Notes: a model not told the origin generated them from the letters alone. A DNA stretch of 64,000 bases from Eutreptiella sp. 'Long Island Sound 2002' (GCA_964036045.1 OZ038379.1:39122001-39186000), one strand, 5' to 3'. Positions 1-55,822 are shown, numbered from the stretch's first letter. Numbers and translations: made by a program.

Positions 1-3000
1 TCTCCTACGAGGACCCCACCAGCCTTTTTCCGGATAGCGTGCACCGGCACATTGTCCAACAACGTTGCCAGGGACCCCCCCCCCCCTGTTTGACCTGCAT
101 CACCAAGGTTGCAAGCGTCACCACGGGCTTTGTGGCCCACGACCTCCGCGTAGGCGTAGCGATGACCTTTAGATCCCGGGTGGTAGCATGTCTTGCAATG
201 CCCAAACCTGCGAAGACAACGTGGCATGAAACGTGTCCCATGCCGAAGGTTCTCGGCTCACCTTGTAGCGGTCTGCATCCGCCGCGGCAAACCGGTGGCG
301 CATGTCAAGTGGGCGTTTGCCGTAGCTTTGCCAGACTCGCAAAGCGGTGCAGTGTATATCTCCGTACGGTTCGAGGCGAACCCCTCGGAGCCGAAGGGAT
401 GCCCAGTTGTCGCTTGGAAGGATCCCTACACATCATCGCACCGCACATCGGCTTCTGCGCCAAACCATGGTCCCGGTATCCACCAAACCCCTCAAGATCT
501 GCCTGCTCATGACATTTCGAGGGCACCCAAGACCGCTGATCTGCGGAAGGTACTGCGCCATGTCTCCATTTCGGCCCTCCGGCGATCCCAGACCCCAACA
601 CTTCACATGTGCGCTGCACAATGTGCTCAGCCCTTGTGACTATTCGTGGCGCAAAGTGTGCTTCTATCGCCTCCGGCTGCCCACCATAGACACTGTAGTA
701 GATCACCAGTACGGCAAAGTGTTTGGCCTACCCAAGTGGTGTGCGCGTGGAAGCCTCTTAGCGTCGCTGATCCACGGCGGTCCCCAAGTGCTGGCGGTGT
801 GTGTGCGGGCAATCATCTTGATGGCTGGCACGCGCAGTGTTGTTCCCTAGGGGAGGAACCCTCTTGCGGAAGAGGCCACGCGCTATCTGTTGGTCGCGTC
901 GACATGGGAGGTTGGCGCACAAAGCACCGTGCTACAAGATGCTTTGGCGAAGTACGGCTTGGCCCTCCATCCCCCGCCGGATCCCTAGGTCGACTTAGCG
1001 CTATTGCAATGCACAAGCTTGTTGCAGCACGCTCACCACCTGGTCCCTGTGTATGTGGAAACCGGGGGAGCGCTTCGTGGGTCTACATTGAGCGGCGGCA
1101 CCCTTGTGTGGCGCCCTGGAGTCGGCTATCATGTACAAGGCATGGGTACGGGATGTGCTTGTGAGGGGCATCCCCAATGGACGGGCAATGGCTGGCCCAC
1201 TGGACAACAATGCTGCCGTTTGCATGGCCATACCTGCCCGCATACTTTGTGATGGAGGCCAACCATGCGCATTATAGCTCCATCTCTTTAGCCCGTGTTG
1301 CGTCTTCGCTATTGCTGGTGCTATACAAGCATGCCATGGTGTTGCGAAGGTCAAGTCAACTGGGCGAGATGTGGGTCCGGGCGGGTCATTGCAACAACAG
1401 TATGGCCCCTGCTTGTCCGTTTGAACCGCGGGGCGCACAATTTGGCTAGGGCGAGCCTGTGCGTCGCAATGTCCTTCACAACTCTGTGGCTGCCCTCGCT
1501 GCATGGTTGCGGGGCAGCCTTTGCGAGAAGTGTTCTCATCCTCCATGCTAATAGCTTTGAAGCTGCTCGGACAGCGGTGACGACTTCGGTGGCAGCACCT
1601 CGGTTACTGCCATTCTAAGGGGTGCCATCCTACAAGGCCTGTGTGGACACCTTCACCAGGGGCGCCGTGAATCAACTTGTCCTCCAATGCGTCTTTTAGC
1701 TCCGCTGCGTCCAGTTCCAACGTCAACTGGTTGAAATACATGCTCATAGCTAACGTATGTGCGGCGACATCGCTAGGAATTTACTAGCCCAATTGCGTTT
1801 TAGCTACCTATACTACATGGACTTCGTTGTCTCGACTTTTGGGGCCCTTGGCTATCACGAATCACTGCAGGCACTGGCGGTTGTTGAGACATGAGCATGC
1901 ACTTGGTACACACAAATGGGAGCGCCGTTGGAGTGTGGGATCCAATGCAAGTGGGGCTCGTGCTCCTTGCCAAGATCCTTCCCGTGATCGCGTTGTCTGT
2001 CGAGCCGCATGGGAGGGATGAGCTTGCGCCGTCTTGGGGGTGGTGGTAACAGTGATATCGTGGTGGTGGCTAGCCTACGACCCTAAGTCTGCCCTACTGC
2101 TGCCGCCGCCAGCCGGCAAAGCAGCCGGGTGCGCCGGCCCTAGCAGCGTAGGTATCAATATTTTTTTGTTTCAATTTCTTGCCTGTGTTCATTTCACATT
2201 TGAGATTTACACCAAAAATTAGCCACTAATATTTATCCCACAGATTTTTGACCGCGATTAAATTTGTCACTTTTTTTGTCTGCAAATGCAACGCGTGGAA
2301 GGAAGGGTCTAGCACGCTGCACCACCCCTTACCTGATCTCTCGCAAGAAGTGTTGCGGTGTGCTACATCGACGGGAGTTTCAACTCTGGTGGTAGGGGGG
2401 GGGGTCCGTCCGGCGCCGCCTCCTTTGACACACACGGTAAGGAGAAGGAGGAGCGGCGCCGAGAGAAGGAGGAGCGGCGCAAGGTGTTGCAGATCGAGAG
2501 GACGGTGAAGGAGGTGACACGGGCCCATCAGGCTAGCCGGCCACAAAAGGTTGGCGGAGGTGAAGGGGGAGGAAGGGTAGGTGGTGGTACAAGAGGATGA
2601 GGACAAAAGAGGGGATGGGACGGGTAGAGGAACATAACCCCCCCCCCCCCCCCGAACCCCTGTTCTTCCCCTCCCTCAATGGGTCCAGAAGGCCTTGGGG
2701 AACGGCTAAGCGATCTATTCCAAGGTAACCGTTGTGGCGTGGTGTAGCGAAATCTGGAGCAGGGCTATGGCCTAGACCACCACATTTTTGCTGACCCCCA
2801 AAAGGCGCACTACACCCTGCGGTGCTGTATGCGCCGCCTTTTTCATTGCCTAATTGGAAGAACGTCGAGGGCAAGGGGTACTGGCAGAAAGATCCGCCAC
2901 AGGGGCTGCCTAGCGCTGCCACCCAGTGTTTGGGGGGCCAATTTGTCCGACGGGCAAAATGGTTTGCTTGAGGGCAGGGGGGGCCCTCAACCTCTTTTTG

Positions 3001-4144
3001 GACCCATGGGGGATGCACTTTGGCACCAACCAAGACATAGTGTGCTTGCAACTTGCAACACTAGGTAGCTGTGGACTGGTGCCAACAATGGCGGGACGGC
3101 AATTTGGTGTTTTTCGCACCGGTTTGGCATGTGCTGCTTGCAGTGCCCCCCCTCCCCCCCCATACGACTATGGGGCGTAGCACAAATACAAGGGGCTGCT
3201 GATTGGGTCCCGGAGGACAAGAACTATTGCGAGCATCACTCGGGCGACAAAGCCTAGGGCTGCCGCTGCCATTGTCATTGCCATTGCTATTGTCACCTTG
3301 GGGGACCCCGTGGATGCCCCCATTGTGGCTTGCACCTTTTGCATGGCCACGGGGGTTGTATACACCAAAGACTATCACCATTTTTGAGAGGCATTATTCT
3401 TTGCTTGCTTGCTTGCTTCCATTGAATACTTTGCACACTTGGTTTAAATTTTCGGGTTGAATGTTTAAGATATAAAGCGCCGACGCAATTTTCAAAAATT
3501 GGCCTTAAGAATTCAACGGAAAAAAATTAAAAAGGTGACCAAAACAATTGATGTTCCCCTTTTTGACGGCTTGTACCTGTTTGGTTGCATGCGAAGCACG
3601 CCCTAAATTGACCCCGAAGAAGAGCCCAAACCCAACCAAACCAACACCACCAACCCGCCTAACCCACTCAATACAATCCAAGGCACCCCAGCACCATGGG
3701 ACCCGATGACGGGCTCCCAAGAGGTAGCAACCTCAAACAACGGCCCGAGTGGCCAAGGACATGACCGGTGAGGCGTAATGGGTATGTGCTTTGTGTTTTT
3801 GTGCTTGTGTGGGCAGGTTTGTTTTTTGGAAAAAACATGTAAATTTTCTTCGTTGATTTTTACTTGTGTGGCCTCGTGATTTTGTAAAAATCTGCAATTT
3901 TTAAGCCAACAATTAATCTCAAATTTTAAAGCCAAAAGCCATTTTTAGTATTATTACATATCTACACCGGTGACCCCCTACACCCACGGGGTAAAATTGT
4001 AGCCAAACACACAAGGTACCCCATGGGGGTGGAAATTTTGACCAATGATCACCATAAACTAGCGCACAAAGTGACATTTTTCGTATAATCAATTAAATTT
4101 TGGTCATATTTCAAATATGCTGGCTTTAATGTGGGTCTCTAGGG
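1..4144 (+). mobile_element. Decayed copy 1 of RAG1/Transib-like TIR DNA transposon family (left end not seen)
   Basis: 3900-4144 aligns with the reverse complement of 48241-48480. It ends ggctttaatgtgggtctctaggg, matching the family TIR gactttaatctaggtcactaggg (53368-53390). Transposase relic PARILCDGGQP at ~1233-1265 resembles PSRLVIGGDQP of copy 4. ORF2 relics lie at 2300-3750. Confidence 0.7.
2290..3395 (+). pseudogene. Relic of transposon companion gene ORF2 (copy 1)
   Basis: K/E/R-rich stretch, then CCMRRLFHCLIGR and LFLDPWGMHFGT..LQ. These match MWIFRRLIRCLIRR and LVFDPRGFRFGT..LQ of ORF 49793..50599. Stops and frameshifts are present. Confidence 0.75.
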
Positions 4145-6578
4145 CGGACATGGGCGTATACGACTGTCACCATCGCGGTCTGATCGGCTTTAGGCTTGCC
4201 CGCCACGTACTCTAGCACTCATGGTAGCTCAGCCAAGAGAAGGTCAGGAAATGAGTCCGTGGCGTCCGAGCGTCCAAACCCTGCAAGCGGCTAGCCAGGA
4301 CCGCATAGAACAGCACCATGGAGGCCAACGACGGGGGCTGATGCAAGATTTGGAGACGTTCCAGTTGGCATCATGGTGGCGCAGCCGTGTACACCCGCCT
4401 AGCAGCCGGGTCCTCGGTGACCAAATAGCACCAGCCACGTTTCCGTAGGCCGCAACTCATTGGGCGCTCGGCAGGAGAGAGATTGGCAAAGGAGTGGTTG
4501 GCACCAAGCATGCTTAGGCTCGTGAACGGCAAAGGCACAGAAAGAGTGGGGATGGGGGAGGCAATGGGAAGGCGGTACGGCACGGGTCACTCACGTTGCA
4601 GCAGGTCCCGTCATGCTTATGCGCCCTCCGTGCATGGCTAGCATGGTCGCACCCTAGGCAGACCTGTCCACGTGTCAAGCACGTTGCGTTGGACAGCGGT
4701 GCCATTTCTGCAACAGGGCAAGAGGTTGGTGGGAGGAGGGCCGCTATGTGTTGTTAGCACGTCACTGGGTTGGAGTGCGATCGCGGTCGGTGGGGGGCCG
4801 CCAGAGCGCCTGCCGGACGGGGGCTCACAAGCGGCGTGGTGCAAGGGGCGAGCAAGCAAGGAGCATGAGGAAGGAGGAGCATAGCCAACGCGAAGAGGTT
4901 TCGCTAGCGCTGCCCACAACTAGACGGTGCCTCCTATATATCACACGCATCCAAGATGCGGCCAGGTTCACGTCGATGAATAAGTCAAGGTTCCGCACCA
5001 CCACATAGGACATTACGGCCGCTTCGACGGCACCCGCTACGCGGCTGTTGCGAGGAAGTCGTTACCGCGGGATCATGAAGAAGTCCACCACCATGATAGT
5101 GTTGCGGCCCCGAATCACTTGATGAGCATCACAACAGCCGTGGCATGCTAAAAGGCGGCCGTCGGGGACCACAAGGCAGGACCGGCACCCGGCGTGCCCG
5201 CATTCAAGGCGTCATGGGCACAACCAATCATGCAGAATAGGCAACCGCCCAAGACGTCGGACCAAGGGCCAGACTTCGCCACCACCGAGGCGAAGCCCAC
5301 AAACACGCAAGAGGGGGGAGGGGTGCAGTGAACAACCACATAGTTGGCCCCAACCATTCTTGGGCCTTGGGTCGCAGAGCTGTCCATGGCCATGAAGCTT
5401 CACACATGCGGACTCCCAAGGCAGGGCGCTAAAAGGGCTCTGGCTAAACACCCAATCTGTGGGGACTGAAAAGGGCCGTGTCGATTCATGGCCATGAGGT
5501 AGCGGGGCGGGTCTCTGGTCTCATAGGAAGTTATTGTCAACCCCTCCTTTTCTTAGAGCTTGCTCCATCCCAAGTCGTCACCACTGCACTGCACAATGAC
5601 CCTAAGCGCTGAAGCTGCACGGTCCCCTCGCTGCTCCACCGAGCCAAGCAGCAGTTTCTTCATCCCAAGTGCCCTGGCGACACAACCCTTGGGTAACTTT
5701 TGCGGAGCGGTGGTGTGGAGCGGCGCGTGTTGTTGAGTTGGCACTTGGGCTTGGACTTGGCGTGGCCGCGGACCACGGGCGGGAGCCCACAGGGTGTTGA
5801 GCTAGCATCTTGACCTGCGGGGTATTATTTTCTCCTTCCCGGCAGCCAACAGTGCGGCCTTCCACATGTGGCCCCACCACCACACAAAGCTCCATCTACA
5901 CTTTGACAACCCGGCACGCGCAGCAACCTTGCACACACCACGCCGATGGACAATGAGACACACAGACACCGCCATAACGGCGCGACACAAAGCTACCCTT
6001 GACCCAACCGCCTCCGGCACATGGCGCACTAGACACAAGACGCCGACACTAGCCCCAAGCCTACTGCAAGGCACCTCACGCCACGCCACCAAGCCGCCAA
6101 GTAGCGAAACGCTAACCAAGGTGACCCATGCCGCACCAATAGCCGCATCACACAACACATCCAAACGCCACAAGGCCACCGCACTGGCACCAACACCCAA
6201 GCACCCAAATGCGCACCGCCAACCAACACCACTGGGCACATCAAGCAGAGGGAGGCCAACACAACACCGGCAATGAAAGAATGAAAGACCCGGATCCAAC
6301 AGGTACCACCGGACAACATCACTGGACAGCCAGAAGACATTTGACCGGGAATAGCAAGCCCCACAACAACCTAACCCACCCTGACGTTGCTCACACCAGA
6401 ACGCACGATGCACCAAAGCACTTAGGCTGAAAGGCCACCAACACAACACCAAGGCCGGGGGCACAAGTGTATAGTAAGCACCGCCAACGACGTACCCATC
6501 GGGCACGACCACATCACATTGACAAGGTCGGCTCCAAGAACACACAGAGACCCGCGCAGCAAAATGCCATGCAGGGTA

Positions 6579-8817
6579 CCCCGGGAACCTGTCTCAAAAA
6601 CATAATAACGTTCAAGGGAATCACATTTTTTTGACGTTTGAACACTATTTTTCAAAACTTTCATAGTGCTTTTCACCATTTATGCGACCTATTGCCGTGG
6701 CAGTTTTTTGTGATTAATAATGGATGCCCGTGTGTTTTTGAGACGGTGGTGGTGTTTGTCACGTTTTTCAATCGTTGCAAAAATCGTTCAAAAACCAGCA
6801 CAATTGCTTCAAAAAAGTTTTTTTGAATGCTTTTTGACGTTTGAACTTTCAAAATTGAACAATCTTCCCACAACGTAAGCATACACACATGCAAAACACA
6901 ACAGCCTTTGACGTGTTGCAGCCCCATTGTCACATGGATGTCCTCCGCGGACACCCCAACAGGCTCCGGGTGTCCCTTAGAGTTCGCGGGACTGGGGGGA
7001 CTCCCAAAGAGCTTGGGTGTCCCGGGCGTCTTGGGCGGACTCAGCAGCTCCCGCATCTCCGGTACACCGCGACCACCTGGGTGTGTGGTGTCCAGGCAGG
7101 CCGCCTCCTGTACCTGTTCCTAGGCCTGCAGCAGACAGTAAACCTCCTCCCATCCGGAGAGGCAGTAGAGCCCAGGCGTATCCCGGTGCGTGCCCCGTCC
7201 AAAACGGATTGGACCCTAGCCCGCAATACCTTCTCAAGGTCACTGCATAGGGCTTCCAGGAACTGCACCACTAACCGGCCCACTGCCATGATGCAGTGCA
7301 GGATGCACATCAAAATGTGTTGCCGTGCCATACACGTCAGGGGCTTGCCGACGCAACCGGCATGTTGCAGGCTATGGCCATGCAGCAAGTATTGCCGGTG
7401 GTGGTCTGCATCGCGTTGCAGGGTGCGGTGCTGTCGGCTGCCTTGCCACCGCCGGGTGGTGGAATCCCATATTGCCTCGTTGTAGATTGACCCCACTTGG
7501 GGGGCAATTGAGACACCCACCCAGCGGCGGATCCAGGGGCTATCTTCGGCGCAGCGAACGGTGGGAGCACGCTTCACATTGGCCCAGGTAAAGCGGCCGG
7601 TGTCATAGATGTGCTGCAAAATCTAAAAGCAAATATGAATTTTGAATGTTCAAAAATCTTTTTTGAAGTTCGAAAAACAGAATTGGGGCAGGTCTGCCCG
7701 TTCTTCAACGTTTTTGGAAATTTGAACATTCAAATTTGAACGACTAGATAGCGAAACGAAATAGCTACGTGTTCGTGCAAACCATCCTTGCAGGTTGTCC
7801 TTCCATATGGCACCCAGTTGAGCCATATCCTTGTCACCGCAGACCGCCATCCCGATGACCCAGTAGTACGCCGGTTGGCGGGCGCGGGCACCATGGTTGG
7901 CCAACGCAATGCCCAGGTGGCTCCAGCTTCCCCCTGCGTAGGGGAACGCATCACCCCGCACAATGAACATTAGGGGGTGTGACCAGTCAATGCAATCGCG
8001 CAGAGCGTTGCGCGATTGCACGTAATTGATCCAAGAAGCGATGGGCCACGAGTGGCCCGACGAAGGCAGGCTACCGGCGGTGACGGGGGGCGCCAGCTGG
8101 AGGGGGTACAACGAGCCCGCCACTCGGCGTCGAAGGCCTCCCGGGTACAAATGGGCCGCAAAAATGGCCATCCGGTCTTCAAGGAGTACTGTAGACCCTG
8201 CCGGGTGAATAACTCCGACAGGGCACGGAAGCCGTACTTTGGGGCCTTCAAGGCCACAACAAGTTCTACGGCGCCAAGCGGAGTGATCAACAACTCTGCG
8301 TGTTCCCGTATGGCAGCGTCCTCCGCAGCACGCACCACTTTGTGGCCACCCTCCACGGTGGCTTGCTCCCACCGTGCCTTGCAATGAGGGGAGGATACCG
8401 ACCATTGGGCCAATAGGTGGCCCACTCGCGCATCCCATAGGTTGGCCGCCCCGCTCAAGCGAACCAATGTCGCCGAGAGCTCCTCAATCACATCCCGCCC
8501 ATAGAGCGGTGCTGTGCGCGCGCTCATACTGGTGGCCCCAAAGAAGAAACAACAAAGTGAAGGGCTATACAAACAGTGGTATGCACGGGGCACAAATACC
8601 AAAGGGTCATCAAACAAACCTCCCCCACAGCAAATGAAGCACACTACCGTTGGGGGTGCACAACATGCCATATGCAATACCATTAGCTCAGAAAAAAACG
8701 TTCAAAAAAGAAAATTTTGTTCAAAAAACTGTTTGAAATTGAATGTTCAAAAATGAAAGTTTCAAAATTGAATGTTTCTTTTTTGAACGTCATTATGTTT
8801 CACACAGGTACCCGGGG
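6579..8817 (-). mobile_element. Copy 2 (different subfamily) of RAG1/Transib-like TIR transposon, 2.24 kb, internally deleted
   Basis: Imperfect ~36-bp TIRs: ccccgggaacctgtctcaaaaacataataacgttcaa at 6579 vs the reverse complement of the right end, ccccgggtacctgtgtgaaacataatgacgttcaa. TA flanks both ends (6577-78, 8818-19). It contains the transposase 5' two-thirds. Confidence 0.85.
6990..8527 (-). pseudogene. RAG1-core-like transposase, two exons, frameshifted and 3'-truncated
   Basis: Motifs FIVRGDAFPYAGG, AVCGDKD, AEDSPWIRRWVGV..GSIYN and MCILHC. Intron 7623-7787 sits at the same position as in copy 4, with an intact ttttag acceptor and the donor mutated to GG. Confidence 0.85.
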
Positions 8818-13300: not shown

Positions 13301-15454
13301 AAATGTTTTTGCTGAAATGGAAATGGGCAAAAATTAGCCCACAACAAACAACTCCGTTATCGTAAATGTGGCAACGAATGGGATAGGCAAGCTAGGACTC
13401 CTACTAATTTGATGAATTGTTCTTCTGTTGTTGCGGACCGCCATTTGGTCCACCTTGTCAATTAAGATATTCGGATGATAGGAAAGTCAACGTCCCACCA
13501 AAAGCAGCAAACACCCAATAGCATGAATTTAACGAGGAAAACATTTAGAATTTCCCTTAAAATTGGTTTTAGGCAGGCTTCCTAAGTCCGAATATTTTGG
13601 ACGAACATACCTTCTCCCCTATTCCTCGCTCTCTTCAATACACATTCATCAATTCGACGAGTTAGGCAAATTTTAACGGTTTTATAAGGTCGAGCGATGT
13701 GTTGCCTCTCATCGTGCTGCAAGGTCAAACATTCAAAAGATATGAATAATGATAATGCGCTGTTATGTTCTTCTTTTCGACAAGCAGCCAACACGTGCAT
13801 GGATGTGCAAACACAGCACTACGTAGTTGGTCGACGACTCACCCATTGCTTAGCGAAACCAGCCCTTCGTTCCGGCAACGAGATCGTCGAAGAAGCTGTG
13901 GTTGGGGGCAAAAGCGAGAATCTCGTAAGATAGTGTGTTGCACTGCGGTACGATAAATGACCAAGGAAAAGTTGGCATCATCCGGGGATGTAATGCCCAT
14001 TGTTCCCACGTTGGTGTGCCGTGATGGAGACAATTGTCTTCAATATCTATGGAACCCTCCGTGTTCAAGTTATGCCACAAGCATCACATGGTGTGCAAAC
14101 TTTTAAAATTTGCGGATCTTGCATTTTGCGAAGACCCCCATATTGGAATGAATTTTTTGCGATTTTTTTTTTCAGTTTTGACCGCATAAATTTGAATGGT
14201 CGGCCAAAAATTTAATGTTTTTGCGATTGTTTTTGCACTTTGCATTCAAAAATATAATTAGTGCATCCAATTGAATTGCAGATTCGTGCGGGATCACAGA
14301 GAAAAAAATGTGGCTGAGTGAAGTTTATGGAAATGGTGCCGAATACAGGAAAGGAAAACACACAAAGGAGATGTGGAATGAGAAATACCAGTTACTTGAT
14401 GCGCGGAATCAATTAAATTTTTGCAATTCTTCTGATTTTTGTGTTTTCGTTTTGATTGTATTGGTCAAATTTTTTTTTTTTGTCGGATGGGACCAATTTT
14501 ATGTGCACAACCTACCCGGAAAATTTTTTAATTTTAAAATAACCAAAGTTTGCACGGTATGGAACAACCTGGGCTCCGTAGCATGCTTGTAGGTACCGAA
14601 TGCGATCGCTATCACGATCAATGACTAGTCAGCTCAAGGTGCAACAAGACCCAATCGCCTTCGATACTTGTTGTCCATCTAATTTGCCCTTCCTGAATAT
14701 ATATTAAGGTTCCACAACAATTCTACGAGTACCCTTGCCCGCTCTGTGAGGCATGGTGCACGGGGATTTGCAAGTCGCGCTAGTGCCAGAACCCGTCATT
14801 GATGGCGACTCAAGACCTCTGCAATCACTTAACGGCCATGTATTGCACTGCGCACATGACGTGCGCAGTGCATTGGCCTCGTTGCGGTGGCATGTTGCAG
14901 CTATTCTTGCCCTAGTGACCCAGATTAAAGCCAATATAGTTAACGTCTGGTGAAAAGTTAATGACATTAATGCAAAGGTTTATGTTTTTGCCTGATTTTT
15001 GGGGGTACATAGGGGAACTTTCTACCCCTGCCGCGTGCCTTGCGTTTTCAGTGGTCATTTCCTTCCGGGGTTTGGGCTTTGGGCTTTGGGCTGTCTTTCC
15101 CAGTCCGAAGAAGGCCTTATGGGCCCACAGGCTGCCTCTACGGGGATGCCAGGCACAAGCCCACCTCACACACCCTGCAGCCACCCGGCTGGAGAGCGGG
15201 GCATACGCCTCCTAGTGCGGTTGTGCTGTCACGGCGTCATGGTGTTGTGCGGGTCCTTTGGCCACGTGCAAGTGACGAGACCAGGGGGGCAGACGTAGAG
15301 GAGGGGGGACCACCTGCCGGGGTCTTTCGGGTTCCTAGTTCCCTTGGTCTCCGACGTCAAGTCCTCCCCCGTCACCCGAGGGAGGATGCTTCCCCTAGAA
15401 AGAAAGAAGCAGGGAGCGTAAAGCATGGTCGGATCGCCGACTGACATGCCAAGG

Positions 15455-23499: not shown

Positions 23500-26030
23500 A
23501 GCACAAACACACCGAACAACACATTCAACATGCTTTTATACCATTTTTTTTGTGTGGCCATCTTGGCCGGATGGGTCAGTTTTTGGGCCTTTACCCTTCG
23601 TTGGAACCCTTTGTTGTGGCATCACCCCTGTTGGTGGGGTTGGTAGGGTATGGTTTGGGTTTGGGGTTGCTTGCGGGGTTAGTTTGTGGGTTAGGCTCAT
23701 GGTAGAGGGTTTAGCCGGGGGTTGGCCTTCTTCTTCACCCCCCCCCCAAACTTGTTGCCGATGCTTTTCGGCGTCCTCGGCGGAGGGGAAGAGGAGGCGA
23801 TGGGGCACTTCGTAAAGTGTGCTCTTGCTTGGGTTTTAAACCCACCGCCCCAAAGACCCCCACCCCCCCGTAGTCACCCCCCGTCCCCGTAGCCAAGCCC
23901 CCCCCCCCCCAAGCTTTACGCCAGTCTGGACGACCAAATTGTCAGGACCGTTGCACACATCCCCCACCCCATGGGGTTGGAGATGGGCATTGTTCACATT
24001 GTTCATCGGTCCAAGGGTGGTGTTGTTTGGGTGTGGCTTTGGTGGTCGTGGTGGTGGTGGTGGTTTGGAGGGGTAGCCGGTGCTTCTTGGTGCGGATTGA
24101 GCCCTCGCAAGAGTCGGAATCCGGCTCAAATTGAATACGCTTCTCGGCCCTTTGGGGCTGGAGCTCGGGTTGGCATGTCACTTGAGGGGGGAGGGGGGCT
24201 AGGGGTTTGACGGGGGTCGTTGTGGTGGACTCTCTCCGCTCCTCCTCACTGCTTGCTCCTCCATCATCCATTGCCACTCACATGTCCCTATCCTACGCCC
24301 TCATGAACCCTATTTCTGACAGCTTGGCCCACTGCGTGGGCTCATACCCCTTCCACATCACCCACACGTCCGCTGCCACCTGGCCTGCTTCACAGTCTCA
24401 CAAGCCACGTGGCAGGGAAAGGCCAAGGTGTGCAGCTTGGGCCAAGATGTAACGTGTAGCCTTTGTGAACCGTCCTTTTGAATCCAAAACGTCTTTGACC
24501 TATTTTCGACTCATTGTTTACATTGTGCCTTGCTACCGTACCCGTGTGCCGTGCTCTTCTCCAAAAATTCAACAAAACTAAGGACTTCATCAATGCACTT
24601 TGGTACCGGGCTGAAATTCACACACCAATTCACAAAAAAATGCATTCACACTCCCATTCACGCGCACATTCATAGGTCCTTCACACCATTTAGACAAACG
24701 CGAAATCACACGAGTTTCGCGTGATTTTAGCACGAATTAGCATCCATCTCACGATTATGTCACACATGTTTCCTCTGTGCTCCCAGGAGTATTTCATGAC
24801 AACCCTTTGGTCCCTCCATGTTGTACGAATGGGACGGGTATTGGTCGCATTGACCATCACCTCGGCGACCTAAAAGACAGAAAAAAGAAAAGCCAAGGAG
24901 CAGTTGATTCATTTTTAACGCGAGTTTGTGAACATGTAATAGTTAATATATTTTACCTCAATTTTTGATACTTGAAGCGCTGATGCAGGAATTAAATATT
25001 CATTGAGATGTTAATGTGAACGCTCGAAATATTAACCCGCATCCTGCCGTTAACATATCTCACGCACTGATGTAGTTCCCATTGCTTGCACGCTGTGTGA
25101 AATAGGTGCCCGCCAAGGGCGCCTCCGCAGGCTCAGCAACCACCTCAACTGCCTGCGCTGTAGCTTGCGTTTACCCCGTTGCCGCAACCTTGGTGGGGGC
25201 GTGGGGATGATGGACCCGGAGGCTAGTACCCCGCATCCCCGTGTCATCGTTGTACGATAGCTCCGCCTATGGGTTGTACAGTGGCAGTGGGACCGCAAGC
25301 ATGTTGCGCCAATGTGGCGTAAAATGGCAGGCTTTCCCTTCGTGCCACAACTGCACCCATCCCAAAGGGATGGAGTGCTGCAGTAGCACCAGCTAATGGT
25401 TCGTCTCAAAACGGACATCCCGAGGGCAACCCATTAGATTAAGAGCTGCGAGCGACCCAACCCTAACACGCTGTGCCACCGGTGCCATGGCGGCGCCTGG
25501 CACAGGCCGCCGGATCCCCCCCCCCCCCCGCCCTGCTTGAGTCCTTCCCCAAGATGTCCTTCCCCAATCTATGCTTCGTAAGGAGGCAACGGATCAACCG
25601 CCTCAAAATCTATATCAAAGTTAGACGATTGTGGCGTGCCCCCACAAACAGTTGTTGCTCTGGTGAGGAGGCCTAGTCAAAGATGAGCACCAATCAAAGC
25701 CCTTTTGCGGTGTCACTAGCATTGGCACTTTTGGGGCCCAAGGCCTTGGATAGCCACCGGGGGAAGGGGTTTGGGGGTTGGGGTCGGGGGGGGGGGGGGG
25801 TTGCTCGAGTACATCCCCCGCTATGTCCGACCCCCCCACCCCATCATCCACCTCCACTTCCCGCTCTTGCTACACCCCGTCCCCCTACGTTTCCCCTGCC
25901 CCCCCTCCCCGTTGTGCCCTCTTGCTCTCCCTCTTCCTCGCTTTCCCTCTTCTTTTTCTTCTTCTACTCCTTCTTCTGTGTCCGCCTCCTATTGGAGGAG
26001 TTGTTGTTGACTCCTCTTGGCGCATTGGCC
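23500..26030 (-). pseudogene. ORF2 relic of copy 3
   Basis: VAEVMVNATNTRPIRTTWRD, ILAQAAHLGLSLPRGL..QWAKLSEIG and TLYEVPHRLLFPS match copy 4 ORF2. Same intron acceptor position (ttttag|gtc, ~24870). Confidence 0.85.
24451..24765. mobile_element. 315-bp insertion with 4-bp TSD (ATGT), no TIR seen
   Basis: ATGT at 24447-50 and 24766-69. Removing the insert restores KYSWEHRGNILAQAAHLG in register with copy 4 KYPWGPLHRIVARDPPLG. Confidence 0.65.
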
Positions 26031-26039
26031 ACCGCTGTC

Positions 26040-26730
26040 GATTTGTAACGTCCTTCTCCAAATAGTGGGGGCAGTTGGATAGGCAACCAACCTCGCAACG
26101 CTTGGTGTAATATGTCCGTGGCTTGTCGGAATACAAGTCCCGGAGGAGGTCCCGCATGGCAACCACCGCTTGCCACTCCCCATCCTAGGGCGTAGGCTAC
26201 ATCATCCTGGGCAGCTGCGAGGACATCAGGTGCTGAAGACAGGCACACCCCCCACATCATCCGAGGCAGCAAAAAGGACCATCCCCGCAGCATCATTCCA
26301 GGCAGCAGGAAGCAACACAGCCACATCATCCTAGGCGCTGAAGACAGGCAAACACCGTACAATAGCTAGTTGTGGGCAAAGCTTCCCCCCACCCGAGGAA
26401 CAACACCCCGGACTCCTGTGTCCTGCACCTCCGTTCTCCTCTTCCTCCTCCGTCGGGCGTCGTCGTAAAACCTAACGTATCCCCGGTGCGGGCCCGGTAA
26501 AGGAACCGCTGCGCGGCCAAGGTGGTCTCGTTGGGGAAGGCCGCAAGGCAGGCCTCCATGAACGCCACTTGGAGGCGGCACATGGCCATGCAACAATGGA
26601 GGATCCATGAGGACACCAAACATCGTTCAACCACAATGTGTTGGTCCTTAGCGCATCTACCGTTTTTTGAGCTACCTCTTGTCTCCTTGTTGCGGTCACG
26701 GGTGGCCTCTTCGACCAATGTCACATGTGG
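26040..26730 (-). pseudogene. Transposase relic of copy 3 (middle to C-terminal core)
   Basis: WILHCCMAMCRLQVA, MRDLLRDLYSDKP and SNCPHYLEKDV match copy 4 exon 2. Confidence 0.85.
26200..26364. repeat. 165-bp insertion made of degenerate catcatcc..ggcagc units, with 4-bp TSD (GCTA)
   Basis: GCTA at 26196-99 and 26365-68. Removing the insert restores the spacing seen in copy 4. Confidence 0.55.
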
Positions 26731-46441: not shown

Positions 46442-48616
46442 TGATAAAACGCAGCCCTTTTTCCTCTGCAATCCTCTCCTCTCCTTAGGGATACTGCTAC
46501 ATAAAGCACAATGTTTCACCATGCATTAATCGTGCACAACCTTATTGTATGGGTCAGGGGCGATGTCTCCACGTTGCAGGCCGTTTGCAAGCATATGTCT
46601 TGTCCATACAGATCAATTCATGCTATCGGCCTCTTGTCCTGAACTTCTCAAGAGATACTCGTTTGGACTGCAAGGAGCTACACAAGCTGCATGGCCCCCC
46701 GTCTGGCACAACCAAGGTTTTGCGGCGCGTCTTGGGGCCTTTCCGTGGCACCTAGGCCATTCAAGCAGCCCAGAGTTGCCATACCCATGCGCTCTACTTC
46801 CAATATGAGCATGTTGTGCCGGCAGCACTCCTAGAAACCGTGGACTGCCTCCAACCAGGGGCGTGTTGGTCTATGGTGGCCCTTAGGCAACAGGAAGATT
46901 GGCATCTTTTTTTAGTGGGCTACCCCCTCACCAACGAGCAAGCTTTTTCCACAACTCTGCCATCTATTTCTCCAGAAATAGGGCCAGTGGCTGTACAAGG
47001 GCGGCAGGCAACTCCACTACAACACGCCACCGTAACCTCGGGCCTGTATGTTGATGGTTACCAACCCCGCGGCCACCCCAATATTACCGCCAAGATAACT
47101 CCAATGGGTTTTGAGGAACTACGGTTCCCTCTTGCGGGCTCTGTGCCACGTTGCACAGATATGATATCATAGTCACAATTGCCCAAAACTGTGGATGCAA
47201 AATGGGTGCCTAAGCGGGCAGAGCCCTTACATGCCTCGCCCTCATGTACATTTCAGCAGCGCATGAGATACCAAGGTGTTGAATACACCACTACTCTTAG
47301 GGTACGGTTTGGTTGCATCCCTACAAACCGGCACCATTTGTGGGGTGAATGTAAGCAATGTGTGGCATGTGGATTGCTGAATAAGCACAGGGTGAAGGAC
47401 ATGTTTTTGTAGAAGGGGGGTTGTTTGAATCACATTCGGGGGCGCACATCGATTTCAGCGTGTTTCAAACTTAGAAAATGTATGCGTCATATAGGTTGTG
47501 TTGCCAATCACCAAGGGAGGCGCATCTTGGCTGCTTGGTGTCATTGGGGGCACACTCCCGCCTCGGTCGCAACGTGCGGTGCTGCAAATTATAGCCCATG
47601 TGGCAAGAAGGTACAACCCCGGATCCCTACCGCGTCATAGCCGGGAGCACTCGCGTTTAGTGAGGGGTTGTTTCCTAGCTGGGATCATCCTAACGGGCCG
47701 TGAGGTTCGGGCAGTAATGGGTAGATTGGCAAGTGGCATGGTTCTGCCCTTGCCCTTTCTCTCACTAGTCTTGGGTTATTGCCGCATGCTGCACCTTTGT
47801 TATGGTGGCGCACAGCTGTCCCCTTGTTCATGGCGTCCTATAGGCTTGGTGTGCACATACAGTGTGCACATCATCCCCGAATTCACCGAAGAGGCTTGCA
47901 CTGCAACTCTATATATTCACTGGTGGAGCCACACATGGTTCAACCCTCACACTCCCATGTTGCTCCCTGATGAGGGAGGGGCGAGGGACTTAAGGGTTGC
48001 AAAACCATACGCGCCCGTGACTAGTACACAACAAGATGCTAGTATTTTGGAAACTCTGAAACACTAGCTTTAGCAAAAGTGTGCGGCAAAAGCAAAAAGT
48101 TCCCTCTCCTCCACTTTGGGCCCCTGTCCATCGGAATGTTGTGCTGTAGGCTTACATGGTGGCTGCCAATGTGCTGCAGCGCACAATGTTTGCAGGGTTG
48201 TTACACCACCTCTTTGAATTGCTAAAAGCAGCTGGTTGTACCCCTATTGACCTAGCTCAAAGTCAATATGTTTAATATTTGGCCAAAAATTAACACGTTA
48301 ATCTCAAGTTTCAATTTTTTGGGGGAGGTTAGGGGGTTTGCCATGAAAATTATGACCCCCACGGGTTGCCTTACGGGCTTGGGTGTCATTTCCCCCCGGT
48401 GGTTGGTGGGGGGGTCCTACCCATGTGGTTGTTTGAAAATGTTAAAATGGCTCTTGGCTTGAATTTTTGTTTTTAATCTTTCCATTAATATTTGAAAAGT
48501 TAAAAATTAAAGGGTCGCCGGCATTAATATTAATCTCACAAATATTAACTCATTTCCCCAAATATTAACCCTGCTAACAATGGCACAACGCAACATGGAA
48601 TGCATCATGTGTGTGA

Positions 48617-50885
48617 TTATGTCTCTTGTCCATGGCCATTGTGGCCCCTTGGGTCCCTGTTCGGGCCCTCATACCTCGTGGGACCCGTAGTGGGGTCCCA
48701 CATCTTTGCGGGTCCGGATGGGGGGTTAGTGGGGTTAGTGGGGTTAGTGGGGTTAGTTGGGTTAGTGGGTTGGGTGGTAGGGTTTGCGTTTGGGGGGTTA
48801 GGCGTTTCATTTGTGGGGGTGGGGGGTTTGGTCTTCTTTTGGCCCTCTTTCTTTTGGGCCTCTTCGCGGTGCCGCTCGGCCTCCTCAGGGCTGGGGAAGA
48901 GGAGGGAGCTGTTCACCTCATAGAGGGTGGTGCCGCCCGGGTATTCCACCCAAACGGCACCGTACTTCCGCCCGTGGATACCACGGACGGTGCCCCTCTC
49001 TACCCCTTTGGGGTAGAGTACGTGGACGACCGTCCCGATGATCGGATCCTCGGGACGGTCGTCCTTCTTCTCGGCACCCTTTGGGGTGTCGGTCTTGGTG
49101 GTGGGGGGGGGTTTGTGGTGGCGTTGGTGGGTTTGGGGGCGGGGACGGCCTTCGTAGGCCGTGCGGTGGTGGTGGGGGGGGGGGGGGGTTTCGGCCTTTT
49201 GGGCCGGGGGATCGCCTTGTCTTCGCTTTTCTCGGACGACTCGAAACAAAACTTTCGTTTCTTGGGGGCGGGTTGGGGGGGGTTGGGCTTCGCTTGGGGG
49301 GGGGGTTTCGGGGCGGTCGTGGTCGACGCCCCCCCCCCCCCTCCTCCCCCTCGCTCACCCCGCCCCCAGCCATGCTCCCCCACATCTCCTCATCCTCCCC
49401 CCCCGCGTACCCCACCTCCTGCATCCGAGCCCACTCCGCGGGCCAGAAGTGGCGCGGCGCCACCCATGCGCCGCTCACCACGCGCGAAGTCTCCCAATCG
49501 TGGAGACCTCGCAAGAGAGCAAGGCCCAAGGGTGGGTCTCGGGCCACGATGCGGTGGAGGGGCCCCAGGGGTACTTCCAGGGATCCTTAGCGTCTCGCCA
49601 GGCCACCTGGATGGGCCTGGCATTCGTCGCGTTGACCACGACGTCAATAACCTGAATAAAAGATGAAAAAAAAGATTAATTTTTTTGGCGACATTTTTAT
49701 TTTTTCGACTTTAATATTAACTCTTAACTTTCGATATTTCGACCGGCGGCGCAAAAATTAAATATTAATCTCGAGAAATTGAACGTGGCTTCCTAAAAAT
49801 TAATGCACGCACGCAAATCACATACCTCAAAACTCCCGTTCACTCCGCCTGCCTGAACTGCCCCCATGGCCTCCCGGAAGAGCGCGTCGGCACTGGGGGC
49901 CTCCACAGGGGCCACAGGGGCTCCCGCGCTGGCCATCGGGGCCGCCTGGGCCCCCGGTTTGGCCGCGGTCGCGGCCGTGGTCGCCGACTTGACGGCGCGG
50001 CACTGGGGGACCAAGCCCTCGTACGAGGGCTGGCACCCCGGGTCGTAGGTGGGGCGGGGCAGGGCTAGCACAGTGGCCAAGTCCATCCCGAAGGCCAGAG
50101 CCTTGCCGTGGCGCCACTGCCTGACCCAGCCCAGCTGGGCCCAGTGCTGCAGCAGCACCAGGTAATGCGGAGTCCCAAAACGGAAGCCGCGGGGGTCGAA
50201 AACCAAATTCAGTGCGGGCAAGGCGCCCGCACTGATTGCCTCTGGCATGGGGGCAAGGGGGGCACCAGGGAGGGGTTTCCAGACCCAGACCCCCCCCCTG
50301 GAGGCATCCTTACCCCAGGTGCCTCCGTGTTTCCCCTTGTTCCGGCGGATCAAACACCGGATCAACCGCCGAAAAATCCACATGACTATCATGTGGCTAT
50401 GGGGAGGGGATGAAAAAACGGGTTGATCCCCCGCGCACCCCTCCTGCAGCACCTCGGCTAACCAGGGGATCGGCCCCGCCTTTCGGGCGGTGGCAGATTG
50501 GGGGCCCAGGGCTTTGAGAAGCCACTGGGGGGGGGGGGGGTCATTGGGGGGGTCAACAACGTGAACTTCCCCGTCCCCGTCCCCCTCGTCCACCACCACT
50601 TCCCCCTCCCCCTCATCCTTGACCTTCCTCCCCCCAGGCTGACCTCTACCCCCCCCCCCCCTGCCCCTGGCTCCTCTCCCTCTCTCTCCTCTCCCTTTTC
50701 TCCTTGTTTTTCTTCTTCTTCCCCTTCTTCCCCTTTCGCCGCCTATCCGAGGATTCTCCGCTTGACTCCTCGGTTGGCGGTTGAGCGGCTGGAGGAGGAG
50801 GTGCTTGTGCTGGTGCTGGTGCTAGTGCTGGAGCTGCGGCTGCAGCTGGATGAGCTACAGCTAGTCGTTGCTCCACTTGTGCCAT
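48617..50885 (-). CDS. Companion gene ORF2 (~700 aa): basic/acidic stretches, W-rich domain, C-terminal Tudor-like domain; 4 frame breaks at G/C runs
   Basis: Intron 49652-49825 (GTATGT..CAG). Domain conservation with copies 1 and 3. Tudor-like IIGTVVHVLYPKGVERGTVRGIHGRKYGAVWVEYPGGTTLYEV. Confidence 0.7.
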
Positions 50886-53081
50886 CTAAGAGAGCGAGAG
50901 GATGAAAAAAAAATTAATAAAAAAATTGATTTTTGTGCCTGCAACTTAGTTTCTTGAAATTAGTATTATCTATCGAAAAATTAATTAATATATTAAATAT
51001 TAATGAACGCGCCTATTAATATTCATCTCGAAATATTAAACGAAGCAACGGAAATATTACTTCGTATACGCAAGCAAGCATGCACAAGCAAAACACACCA
51101 GGGCTTCGTTGTTCGCTTTGAACATGTCGGCCAACATCTTTTGCATGGCCGAGGCGTCCATGGCAAGGAGAAAACAAAGCTAATGGTGGGGAAGCAAGGG
51201 TGGAGGGCGGGGGGCTACCGGTGGCCATGAGTTTGGCCATGGTGCATGGGGCGGTATGGGGGGTCCCGTAATTGCGTAGCGGAAGGTCAAATTTTAAAAA
51301 CCACCACTCCCACACCTGGGAAACTACCTCCCCCTCCCGCTCTACTTGGGTTGCCCCCGGCTTCCCCCCCCCCCCCAAGGCCGAGTGGTCATTGTATGCG
51401 CGCTTAAGAATGGCGTTGAGGCTCTCAACGACATCCGCGCACTCGGCGCCCAACCCTACCCCCAAGCGGCGTGGATTGGCCACGGCCTCGGGGACATCCT
51501 CCTCCAAATAGTGGAGGTAGTTTGATTGGCAAGCCTCCTTGCAACAATGTGCACGGTAGGCGCGTGCCACCTCGGCCGCACGTAGGTCCTTGCGGGGCGG
51601 CTTGTCCGTGTACAATTCCCGGAGGAGGTCACGCATGGCCACGACGGCTTGCCGTTCACCATCCTCCGGGACGTAGTCCAACAACGGACCAAGTTCCTCC
51701 CACGCGAGAAACAACGCACGGGCCTCCTCCCCGTCGGGTGCCCCCGTCGCACCCAACTTCACACCCGTGCGGGCCTGGTAGAGGACCCGTTGCACGGCGT
51801 CGGTGTTCTCCTTGGGGAGGTCCACAAGGCGTGTCTGGATGGACGCCACTTGGAGCCGGCCAATGGCCATGCAACAATGGAGGATGCATAGGAAGACCAT
51901 GCACCGGTCAAGCACAATGTGTGGATCCCCTATGCATCCCCCATTCTCCAAGCCACGGCCGGTCTCCTTGTAGCGGCGGCGGGCCGCCTCCTCACGGTCC
52001 AAGGTGCGCCGGGTCTCCACGTTGACCCATGCCGCCGCAACCTTGTCCCACACCCCCATATTGTAAATTGAGCCCACCAAGGGCGAGGTGGACACACCGA
52101 TAAGGCGCCGCACGAACGGTTGGTCTCCCCCGATGACCAACCTGCTTGGCACCCAGCGCGACACCCAATGAAACTTCTCGCAGTCTTGTATGGACTGCAA
52201 TACCTACAAAAAGGACATGGATTAATATTTACATTAGTTTCTCGAGATATTAAGTTAATTTTTCAGACGGCGTTAATATTAACCGAAAACAAGATATTAA
52301 TCTCGAGAAATTAACGCAAAAATGCAAAAAAAAAACAAACAACGAATCGGCCACAAACTTTCAAGTTGTCGGCCCATATCGTTGCAAGTGCTGCCATGTC
52401 CTTGTCCCCGCATACGGCCATCCCTATCACCCACAAGTACGCGGGTGTGCCGCCCCCTGCGCCGTGGTTGAGGAGCCCAATGGAGAGTTGGGTCCAACTA
52501 CCACCGGCGCACGGGTGCGCATCCCCATGCACAATGAAGGTGAGGGGCCTTGTCCAACCGATGGTCTCCACTAGCGATCGGCGTGATTGGACGTACCGGG
52601 CCCATGAGGGTAGCGGCCAAGAGCGCCTACTAGCGGGGGGATCGGAGATGGACACGGGTGGTTGTAGGTCAAGGGGGGTGACCAACTCCTTCCACGTGTC
52701 CGTGAACGTATCCCCAGTGGGGATGGGGCGGGGGAACGGGAGGCCCGTTGCGGCCGAGTAGGCCGACCCCCGGCGGCTCATGTACTCCGACACGTGCCGG
52801 AAGCCGAGTTTGGGGACGTTCAAGTCCATGAGGAGGCCGATGAGGTCCGAGGCCGGGAAAAGGTGGGAGGCATATTGCTTCACCGCCTCCACTTGCTTAG
52901 TACGAATAAGGGAGGGGTAGCCAACCTCCATGGCCTCGGACCATCGGGCCCGGGCCAAAGGGGATGAGGCCACCCACTCACCAAGGAGTTGGGAGACCAA
53001 AGGGTCCCGCAAACTCTTGGCCCCACTCAAACGCACGAGCGTCATGTTAAGCTCGGTAAGGGTGTCCCGAGAGAAAGGCAT
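50743..53081 (-). CDS. RAG1-core/Transib-like DDE transposase, 3 exons (53081-52359, 52203-51099, 50885-50743), ~656 aa, open
   Basis: GT-AG introns at 52204-52358 (phase 0) and 50886-51098 (phase 1). IVHGDAHP (D1). GGDQPFVRRLIGV..GSIY vs RAG1 GYDEKLVREVEGL..GSVY. ILHC vs ALHC. NYLHYLEEDVPE..GLGAECADVVESLNAILKR vs NYFHKTLAHVPE..SIGAWASEGNESGNKLFRR. Confidence 0.88.
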
Positions 53082-54477
53082 AACAAGGGCTATACAAGTA
53101 TACAAGGGAACATGGTGGTGTGGAGGGGGGGGGGATGCGGGCAACCGGAGGGGGGGTGTCCAAGACACCCACCAACACAACATCGGAACCTCTCTACTAT
53201 ACCGTTGTGCAACAATATACCACGTAACACCCCTTATAGGTCCGCATATGTGCATGGAAAAATGGGTACAAATGGCCCGATCGCAAAAATTTGACTTTAA
53301 CCTCTTAATATTTGCGAGATTAATATATTAACGCCTTCATATATTGAAAATTAAAAATTGACATATTGACTTTAATCTAGGTCACTAGGGACTATATTAA
53401 TGGACACGGAAACTCGCATTATAAAGTGGAGCCTCGTAGGTGCCAAGGAGGAAGGAGATGTGTTTTGTGTGTGGGGACTTGTGGCACAAAATGTGGCATG
53501 CGGTGGTGGGTGTCAGACGAGTTGGAAACTATCCAAGGTTGGACACATTTGGTTGGAAAAGTTGTGCCCAATTTAAGTCATGTGCTGCATGTCCAAAGGC
53601 GCTAAAAACACGCAATGGAAAGCGTGTTGCTGAATCAGCCCCCACCCCCAACCCAAATAATACTTGCATTGCTGCTATACCTCCATCTGAGTGGATTTCA
53701 CTTTAGTGGCTCGATGCATTTACTATGGAACAACGTGTTCCGCTTGCACGAAAAGCTAGGCTGATGTGTATCCCCATTGTTGATAGTAACATTGAGCACC
53801 AACTAGTGGAACATGGTAGCGGCAGCAGCAGTAGCAGCAGCAGTGCTAGCAGTAGCAGTGACAGTAGTAGTGAAGGCCCCTCTCGCACCGACTTAGATAG
53901 TGGTGGGCAAGAAGCATTCAGTGGCTCTACGGTAAGTGCCACTAATTATGATTCGTCCTCGTTATCGCGAAGCAACAAGTATCGCCGTGTGGCTGTACAA
54001 ATTGGAAGGGACGTAGTGGATGTAGACGCCATGTGCAGTGATGCATGTCCAGTACACATGCTAAGCAAAGGAGAGTACAGCGCTCACACTTCAAGTTACG
54101 TAAAAGCATTATTCTTGCCTTACTTTTGCTAGTGTCTCTGCATTGCCTAGGTATAATGGCATCTCCTATAGTGCGCAAAATTGTTGGATCCATGCCTAGA
54201 AGTTGTCAAAATGGCTTGCAAAAACGCATCAGAAGTTTTGGTTGCGAGATCGGCCCCAAAAACTCAACCAACATCGGTACCAACATCATGGGGATTTTCT
54301 GGCTAAGATGCCTAAGGGCGCTCTGAAGAAATTTTCCATGCTATGGTGCTTGCAATTTTCGAAATCCACTTTGCAACTTGCGTTGGATTTGATGAGCATA
54401 CATGGGTGGCATTTTCAAAAATCCTAAGCAATATGAGTAGCATTTTCCATCCAAATTTTACCTTCTATGTTGTGTGT

Positions 54478-55822
54478 CTCGGCGACATGAATCTGCGGGG
54501 TGGCCGTGTTGGACCATGCCGCCGGACCGTTGTCCCACACCCCCACATTGTAAATTGAGCCCACCACGGGTAATATCGAAAAGCTCATAAGGCGGCGCAC
54601 GAAGGTGTGGTGTCCCCACATGACTAGCTCGCTAGACACCCATTCATATGTGCAATAGAACTTCTAACCTAACAGAGAAATGGGGTTAATGAATGGATTA
54701 ATATCTGTTTTTTACTATGAAGTTACTTTCAACCAACTTAGATAATATTCACTAAAATCTAGATATTAGTCCGCATATGTCAACAAAAAATTACCGAATG
54801 TGGAATGGGGCACAACTCTCCAAGTTGTTGGCCCAAATCGTTGCTTGGTGCGCCCATGTCCTTGTCACCGCACACCGCCATCCCAATCGCCCACAAATTC
54901 GCGGGTCTGCGGCCTAGTGCACCATTATTGATGAGCAGAACGGAGAGTTGTGTCCAACCCTCACCGGCACCTGGGTTTGCATCCCCACACACAAGCAATG
55001 TGAGGGGCCTTGTCCAATCGATAGCATCCGCAAGTGAAAGCCGCGATTGGATATAGAGCACCCATGATTGAACGGGCCATTACCCACCGCCTGTGGGTGG
55101 ATCCGCAATGGACACGGGAGGCCACAACTCAAGGGGGTTGGATATATCACTTCATCTGTGCAAGAAGTTCTCCCGCGTGGGGATGGCCCGGGCAAACGGA
55201 TAACCCGCTGCGGCTGTGTATGTGCCCCTCGCCATGTCTTTTATTCGGACGCGGTCCCGAAACCAACCTTCGGGGCGTTCAAATCCATGCGGAGCATGAA
55301 TAAGTCGGCCGAGCGAAAGGGGAAGGAAGCATATTGCTTAACGGCCGCCATTTGGGTGGTGTGCTTGAACGTAGGGTAGCCCACCTCGGTGGCTTCGACC
55401 CACCGAACCTGGGCCAAAGGGGATGTGACCACCCAGTGAGCAAGGAGTTGTGCAACCAAAGGGTCACGCAAACTCTTGGCAATAGCCGCCCATGTAAGTG
55501 TCATGCTTAGGGCGGCAAGGGTGCCCCGAGAGAAAGGCATCACAAGAGCTAACAAACGGGAAAAGGTGGTATGAGTGACGTCACTGGTGGCCCTGGGCAG
55601 AAGAGGACCCATGGAGCTACCATTGGAACCCATCTACCATCCCGTTTTGCAGTAATGTAACCCATAAGAACCCCTAGATATTGTGGTATGCAAACAAAAG
55701 AAGGACACAAATGACCGGAAAGTGCGTTAATCGTTGAATATCTAGCACGTCAACATGTCAACCAGTTAATGTATGTAGTATTGACGATTCACCATATTAC
55801 CTTTAATCCAAGTCACGAAGCT
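54478..55822 (-). mobile_element. Copy 5: 5' part of RAG1/Transib-like transposon, decayed
   Basis: MPFSRGTL start at 55540, LVCGDANP, AVCGDKD, an intron, then TFVRRLM..GSIYNVGVWD. Eroded TIR accatattacctttaatccaagtcacgaag at ~55791-55820. Confidence 0.85.

Follow-up and report, generated by a model that had tools for sequence, protein, structure and literature searches.

What kind of transposon places a RAG1-like transposase in the genome of a protist? The question is raised by an element of ~5.1 kb on the minus strand (positions 48242-53390) of a 64,000-nucleotide stretch of DNA from Eutreptiella sp. 'Long Island Sound 2002' (GCA_964036045.1 OZ038379.1:39122001-39186000), which is referred to below, in its entirety, as the window. 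RAG1 is the enzyme that assembles antibody genes, and an earlier examination of the window from its nucleotides alone (the sequence-only reading) had assigned the element to the RAG1/Transib superfamily. Our analyses uphold that assignment for the fold of the transposase and the order of its acidic residues, and go against membership in the strict sense on account of the target site duplication (TSD), the termini, the zinc motif and the sequence searches. We consider it likely that the element represents an unnamed lineage of the CMCT supergroup, that is, a two-gene class II DDE transposon which has a transposase of RAG1 type and is neither Transib nor RAG-like as those groups are strictly drawn.

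Element ends, target duplication and transposase gene

The element is bounded by terminal inverted repeats (TIRs) of 30 nt (48242-48271 and 53361-53390), which are complementary at 27/30 positions (90%). In its own orientation it starts with CCCTAGTGACC and ends with GGTCAATAGGG; the termini read CCCTAGTG.../CCCTATTG... and are of the CCC...GGG type with a CCCTA start. Two further complete copies have the same ends: L008, from the same public assembly, aligns to the window element over its full length with 92.4% identity and stops at the identical terminal bases, as does L009 at 90.8% identity. All three complete copies are flanked by a TSD of 2 bp without fixed sequence (GT in the window, TA in L008 and AG in L009), no reading of 3 bp or longer holds in any of them, and the chance of 2-bp duplications at three independent full copies is approximately (1/16)^3. 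The inverted ends noticed earlier stand, with their length corrected from 31 to 30 bp, since 31 counts one TSD base per side. With its TIRs, TSD, multiple copies and conserved acidic triad, the family has the general features of DDE cut-and-paste transposons.

The transposase gene has two exons (coordinates of all features are collected in Table 1). The start methionine of exon 1 is common to five diverged relatives, and the intron that follows has a GC content of 30% compared with 61-62% in the exons. The spliced protein aligns to L001:140-1576, an uninterrupted open reading frame (ORF) of 478 residues with 32% identity, without a gap over the junction at residues 241/242 (E value 2e-53), and an intron is found at the same position in three diverged relatives from metagenome assemblies (L004, L005, and L006). 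Two GT-AG introns had been proposed for the transposase, and the first of these is borne out by the bridged junction and by the introns of the relatives. The second, at 50886-51098, does not hold as a transposase intron as it is not needed for the frame: if it is retained, the frame stops at TAA 51016-51018 to give a protein of 636 residues, and if it is also removed, the ~656-residue ORF of the sequence-only reading is reproduced exactly. This intron is more simply read as the first intron of a predicted second gene, because an ATG at 51161 starts a run of 21 codons in a different frame, which reaches the donor in phase 0 and continues in frame beyond the acceptor. The catalytic part of the transposase is unchanged under either assignment.

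Catalytic residues and fold

Three acidic positions are conserved in the transposase. The first Asp, D187, is invariant in an alignment of eight relatives, within the motif ..I(V/I)(R/K)GD.(Y/F)P.(A/G)G.. at the end of exon 1. The second Asp belongs to a GGD motif (residue 268, which is D27 of exon 2) and is present in 16/16 family rows, and a helix with the pattern D-x-x-E-S-x-N carries D498 (D257 of exon 2, conserved in 20/21) and E501 (E260, in 19/20). In a phmmer alignment D498 falls opposite the first Glu in the SEGNE of BbRAGL (amphioxus RAG1L), which we take to be the position of mouse RAG1 E962, and E501 follows one helical turn later; on this alignment the last catalytic carboxylate may be either D498 or E501.

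The fold was examined with an AlphaFold2 model of exon 2 built on a 22-row alignment (mean predicted local distance difference test score, pLDDT, 66, with 204 residues at 70 or above; predicted template-modelling score 0.64). MAFFT alignments with separate exon-1 and exon-2 rows were excluded from the modelling, as they laid exon-1 fragments over exon 2. When the model was compared to the PDB with Foldseek, the top 43 matches were all RAG1 or BbRAGL, with a best E value of 3.4e-5 and a probability of 1.00 for nearly all, and lower in the list came HzTransib (E 0.02), the P element transposase (0.37), and Hermes (0.67). VIA-align gave the same order, with a Z score of 14.0 over 277 residues for model residues 3-304 against mouse RAG1 674-997, 11.2 for HzTransib, 6.9 for the P element transposase and 5 or less for all else. 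The best solved-structure matches are thus mouse RAG1 (6xnx), BbRAGL (6b40), and HzTransib (6pqn/6pqx), at Z 11-14 over ~250-280 residues. For exon 2, the comparison to RAG1, HzTransib, and ProtoRAG structures that the sequence-only reading had proposed as a check thus has RAG1/BbRAGL best, HzTransib next and other DDE superfamilies lower.

Further searches gave a broader set of neighbors. An Atlas feature search independently retrieved clusters that carry RAG1 Pfam families, and an Atlas shape search had a nematode DUF1280 cluster among its best matches (TM-score 0.57). Among AlphaFold DB clusters, the RAG1 cluster (5.5e-4) and an EnSpm-type DUF4218 protein (1.2e-3) scored about alike, and many unnamed eukaryotic proteins scored better than either.

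The RAG1 segments picked out earlier are present in the transposase, and their order and register hold over the aligned range. The order of acidic residues is that of Transib and RAG1, and the stretches G.D...R...G......S.Y and ..LHC lie at matching positions. Two of the proposed likenesses fell away. The His of the NYLH that had been matched to RAG1 NYFH is private to the window copy, being found in 0/106 relatives, the majority of which have Leu, and the suggested resemblance of the N-terminal region to the RAG1 nonamer-binding region found no support from sequence searches. Taken on the exon 2 model, the transposase appears to have a catalytic region with the three-dimensional architecture of Transib and RAG1, and we regard this likeness as real at the level of the fold.

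Placement among CMCT transposons

The CMCT clade comprises EnSpm/CACTA, Mirage, Chapaev, Transib, Plavaka, ESTA, as well as Lanisha (Kojima, 2025, PMC12730594). C(2)C and H(3-4)H zinc-binding motifs are common to RAG1, Transib and the CMC groups, and the clade includes RAG1-like members with 2-bp TSDs (PMC12730594). Chapaev has been put inside a broad Transib superfamily by Kapitonov and Koonin (PMC4411706), and Kojima uses the term CMCT. As authors differ on where the group boundaries run, we file the family as an unnamed CMCT-type lineage. It resembles the clade in having a DDE transposase whose second Asp and last carboxylate are separated by a long insertion and which is RAG1-like by structure, as reported for ESTA, in a TSD within the 2-5 bp range of the clade, and in being a TIR element able to carry extra genes (PMC12730594).

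Several results weigh against this placement and are best considered together. The C(2)C and H(3-4)H zinc motif was not found in the family alignment: the conserved Cys and His residues between D27 and E260 (C90, C106, H109, C110, C209, and H219) include none spaced C-x2-C or H-x3/4-H, the position of RAG1 ..VYICTLCD reads ..SIYNMGVWD in the window copy and ..S.Y.E..WD across the family, and that of RAG1 NYFHKTLAH reads S.YL..LE.D in the family. Pfam returned no match for any piece of the element or for 22 family members. A single-sequence phmmer search of the PDB had BbRAGL as its sole match, at a non-significant E value of 0.41, and a search of the PDB with the family profile returned nothing at E<=10, so that the BbRAGL match was lost. 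The fold comparison covers exon 2, at the modest mean pLDDT given above, and in a model of L001, which was left out of the fold search, the N-terminal 129 residues, the first Asp included, fell below a pLDDT of 50. We know of no solved structure of a CMC transposase. For this reason, and because the RAG1 and DUF4218 scores in AlphaFold DB are alike, RAG1 as the best PDB match to the model does not separate Transib from CMC. The family could also sit outside CMCT as currently drawn, since the C(2)C/H(3-4)H signature is absent and the termini are CC..GG rather than CA..TG; its proteins gave no sequence match to a CMCT member in the searches described here, and the protist host is outside the groups listed for the clade (PMC12730594).

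The last of these results concerns splicing. Contigs from four public runs were mapped to the element and none of them contained a joint at a predicted intron. Three of the runs are DNA-like, in that their pieces number thousands and their summed depth is very high, and the sole run recorded as RNA is an estuary metatranscriptome with 29 small pieces on the element. Two metatranscriptome contigs extend from exon 2 into intron 1 with no splice (52183-52322); they do not refute splicing, because they could be pre-mRNA or DNA carry-over.

Within the supergroup the features of the family lean to CACTA/Mirage (CMC), because of the 2-bp TSD, the terminus that is one base off CACTA, the two genes on one strand and the subterminal motif in both orientations. 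The TSD is within the 2-4 bp of CMC elements, whose termini are CAC(TA)... rather than the CCCTA found here. Maize En/Spm (CACTA) and nematode Mirage likewise have a short TSD (2-3 bp; 2 bp in Mirage), two same-strand products with the transposase upstream, and a short motif in both orientations near both ends, and DUF4218 and DUF1280 proteins are among the fold neighbors described above. The motif around the first Asp, GD(G)(Y)P, is similar to the DGFNPF found in CACTA transposases of plants, which we mention as a lead. It is conceivable, though we think it unlikely, that the family is a divergent branch of CMC proper, either Mirage- or EnSpm/CACTA-like, which has lost the zinc motif and combines an En/Spm-like transposase with a TnpA-like binder of subterminal repeats. 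Against it, the zinc signature is absent, and the DUF4218 protein does not outscore RAG1. No Pfam similarity to EnSpm families (Transposase_21, DUF4218 and others) turned up even at E values up to 1-10, the DUF4218 match being one of fold, and the family further differs from En/Spm and Mirage in having an accessory gene without a recognizable domain and a motif that also fills its introns.

That the family is a true Transib/RAG-like lineage with a bearing on the origin of RAG1, as the sequence-only reading held, seems to us very improbable. RAG1 and BbRAGL are the best solved structures, ahead of HzTransib, the one PDB sequence match is to BbRAGL, and the order of motifs is common. However, Transib elements have a 5-bp TSD and a 38-bp TIR with an invariant CAC start (PMC1131882), in which a CACAATG-like heptamer is followed by a nonamer-like block ~23 bp in (Kapitonov and Jurka, 2005, PMC1131882). 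The family studied here has 2-bp duplications, and its ends start with CCC and have no such heptamer and nonamer arrangement. It has no significant sequence similarity to the Transib/RAG1 core and no Pfam RAG1 domain match; the BbRAGL match vanishes with the family profile and the NYLH match rests partly on a private substitution. It also differs from Transib and RAG1 in its lack of a zinc site, in an unrelated second gene and in its AT-rich introns, and from ProtoRAG and RAGL elements in having no RAG2-like (kelch/PHD) partner, as its only other gene has no Pfam family.

Least probable of all is that the likeness is shared by DDE transposases with helical insertions in general and that the family belongs to P, hAT or another superfamily, for although the P element transposase and Hermes do appear lower in the match lists, their scores are far from those of RAG1 and Transib (Z 6.9 for P against 14.0 and 11.2; Foldseek E 0.37-0.67 against 3e-5) and hAT and P elements make 8-bp TSDs.

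Second gene, shared motif and activity

Located downstream of the transposase and on its strand, the second gene spans 48617-51161 (minus) and is preserved at the protein level in the copy at 23554-25759 of the window and in L006:3415-5478. Its N-terminal product is rich in Ala/Pro and Lys/Glu and resembles the N-terminus of the 687-residue second ORF of L006. None of its pieces matched a Pfam family, and thus no kelch or PHD domain was found in them. Atlas look-ups of two pieces scored 0.66-0.76, inside the range of shuffled controls, with phage thymidine-hypermodification families and SH3-like barrels among the matches; the likeness of the C-terminal part to SH3-like barrels is a weak lead. 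The frame of the gene changes at least two times in the window copy, mostly at runs of G/C whose lengths differ among copies, and these changes may be true frameshifts or errors of long-read assembly. Runs of 10-15 bases are located at 49163-49196, 49321-49354, 50516-50540, and 50652-50664. Near the end of the gene (48718-48775) a 9-nt tandem unit (GGGGTTAGT-like on the plus strand) encodes a PTN repeat, the unit number of which varies between copies by 9-nt indels. In L006, a tandem array of ~16-nt units (GGGATATGGGGATACA) occupies 2690-3010, between the transposase and the second gene. An Rfam scan of the whole window returned nothing.

Table 1. Features of the element, in window coordinates; exon and gene assignments are predicted.
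Feature	Position	Strand	Description
TSD, 3' side	48240-48241	.	AC on plus strand, GT in element orientation; same dinucleotide at 53391-53392
3' TIR	48242-48271	-	30 nt, 90% complementary to 53361-53390; L008 and L009 alignments end exactly there
3' subterminal region with TTAATATT-type motifs	48272-48616	-	Motif copies at 48272, 48485, 48524-48561; 48527-48548 pairs with 53305-53326
Second gene, last exon(s)	48617-49651	-	Frame changes at least 2 times; three pieces in different frames with protein matches to copy at 23554-24893
AT-rich GT-AG intron, second gene	49652-49825	-	GTATGT, donor 49825-49824; ATTCAG, acceptor ending 49652; 174 nt, ~30% GC, 3 TTAATATT copies
Second gene, large exon	49826-50885	-	Protein-level matches at 25249-25759 and 2677-3360; frame broken at G/C homopolymers varying in length between copies
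AT-rich GT-AG intron (second intron of the sequence-only reading)	50886-51098	-	GTGTGT..TCTTAG, 213 nt, 29% GC, 3 TTAATATT copies
Second gene, first exon	51099-51161	-	ATG at 51161; 21 codons, phase 0 at donor, in frame after acceptor; overlaps transposase tail in another frame
Transposase exon 2	51016-52203	-	Second Asp (GGD), C.LHC, PDGEE, D..ES.N, RGGG; 490 relatives; AlphaFold2 model; RAG1 fold match
Intron 1, transposase	52204-52358	-	GTTTGT..TTGTAG, 155 nt, phase 0; junction bridged by L001 ORF; same-site intron in L004, L005, L006
Transposase exon 1	52359-53081	-	241 residues; conserved Met start, conserved N-terminal region, first Asp (HGD, residue 187); alignment of eight relatives
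5' leader/subterminal region	53082-53360	-	Motif copies at 53305-53326
5' TIR (CCCTAGTGACC...)	53361-53390	-	Complementarity to 3' end; comparison of copies
TSD, 5' side	53391-53392	.	AC on plus strand

The 8-mer TTAATATT occurs 16 times in the 5.1-kb element, against two occurrences in the remaining 59 kb of the window. Seven of its copies are in the subterminal regions and three in each of the three AT-rich introns, and a longer form, ATATTAATCTCGAGAAATTAA, is found in each of these introns and nowhere else (0 expected). L006 has a different 8-mer, CGCTATAA, in 25 copies that form three inverted arrays (1288-1360, 3021-3321, and 5444-5550), one of which fills its transposase intron, and the introns of L005 and L007 have motifs of their own. 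A role of the motif in RNA structure was considered and is unsupported: in folding comparisons of the three introns with shuffled sequences (z -1.95, -0.58, and -0.19) the introns fold no better than the shuffles, and the intron ends do not pair. For this reason a role at the level of DNA, such as protein binding, seems more likely than an RNA hairpin. That introns and element ends have a motif in common is unusual and may be worth follow-up.

A further reading, to which we give little credence at present, is that the family constitutes a zinc-less sister of CMC plus Transib/RAG1, at the level of a superfamily, in euglenid-like protists, with subfamily introns that are arrays of the motif marking the element ends. 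The introns would then double as internal arrays of binding sites, or would be mini-copies of the element ends that are spliced out. An origin from miniature inverted-repeat transposable elements (MITEs) has been proposed for euglenid introns (PMC11282704), and the sister-lineage reading, if true, would supply a concrete autonomous partner for that origin.

Under the preferred placement in an unnamed CMCT-type lineage, transposition could proceed as follows. A multimer of the transposase, with a putative RNase H-like core and a long helical insertion that separates its second Asp from its last carboxylate, would recognize the 30-bp TIRs together with the subterminal motifs containing TTAATATT. 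Cleavage, with any hairpin intermediate that it might involve, would occur at the CCC...GGG termini through D187, D268, and D498 or E501, and insertion with a 2-bp stagger would produce the 2-bp TSD. The product of the second gene is probably an accessory protein comparable to TnpA of En/Spm.

The sequence-only reading had suggested that the window copy may be active. In favor of this, its 636-residue transposase frame remains open, with the acidic residues intact. In exons 1 and 2, 12 synonymous and 16 non-synonymous substitutions are private to it (ratio ~0.3-0.5), and its private divergence is lower in exons (1.6-2.5%) than in introns (3-6.6%). The ratio of non-synonymous to synonymous substitution rates relative to L008 counts against activity (0.98 for exon 1, 0.47 for exon 2). 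Some private changes fall at positions conserved across all subfamilies (an R-to-L change in RGGG and, next to D187, R-to-H and Y-to-H changes), exon 1 is broken in 4/4 sibling copies examined, no pair of copies exceeds ~94% identity, and no identical exon-2 protein occurs on two contigs. Because of the private substitutions at conserved residues and the disrupted frame of the second gene, the window copy is unlikely to be autonomous, and on these observations its current activity is doubtful.

The family extends well beyond this copy, being both abundant and diverse. An exhaustive HMMER search with exon 2 gave 490 cluster representatives at E<=1e-3, all unannotated and mostly fragments. At least 151 close ORFs came from a word-index search, every one in a single ENA assembly on contigs of 0.02-5 Mb, and the same type of search with L001 returned a single fragment besides L001 itself. 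Four other ENA metagenome assemblies and Logan contigs contributed diverged relatives (32-46% identity). The further relatives announced for the window were recovered as three truncated transposase-bearing copies (7143-8503, 23554-26712, and 54499-55540) and a fragment with the second gene only (2677-3360), in addition to a lone terminus. An inverted-repeat search around the three transposase-bearing copies found no ends, and several old subfamilies coexist, as the window relatives have only 36-61% protein identity to the main copy. The lone terminus (14910-14937; 26/28 bases, with the start CCCTAGTGACC) lacks a nearby partner end and probably remains from a copy that was truncated or interrupted. 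Of the public runs, X6 (organism B) has a contig identical to the window over 170 bases (52040-52209), and the longest pieces of X2 and X3 (organism A) differ from it by 8-10%, at a much greater summed depth. The window may derive from the lineage of organism B, and organism A may contain the family in much larger numbers.

The claim that such a lineage is undescribed in this kind of host agrees with the literature searched, the coverage of which is limited. Since the match is one of fold and not of the Transib family, the element has no direct bearing on the origin of V(D)J recombination. What it does is extend the RAG1-type transposase architecture to a protist lineage for which the literature searched has no such element, and show that such an architecture is possible in the absence of the zinc site that RAG1, Transib and CMC share, and together with a footprint of 2 bp instead of 5 bp. 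In this way the family helps to tell RAG1 features ancestral to the supergroup as a whole from those peculiar to Transib and RAG.

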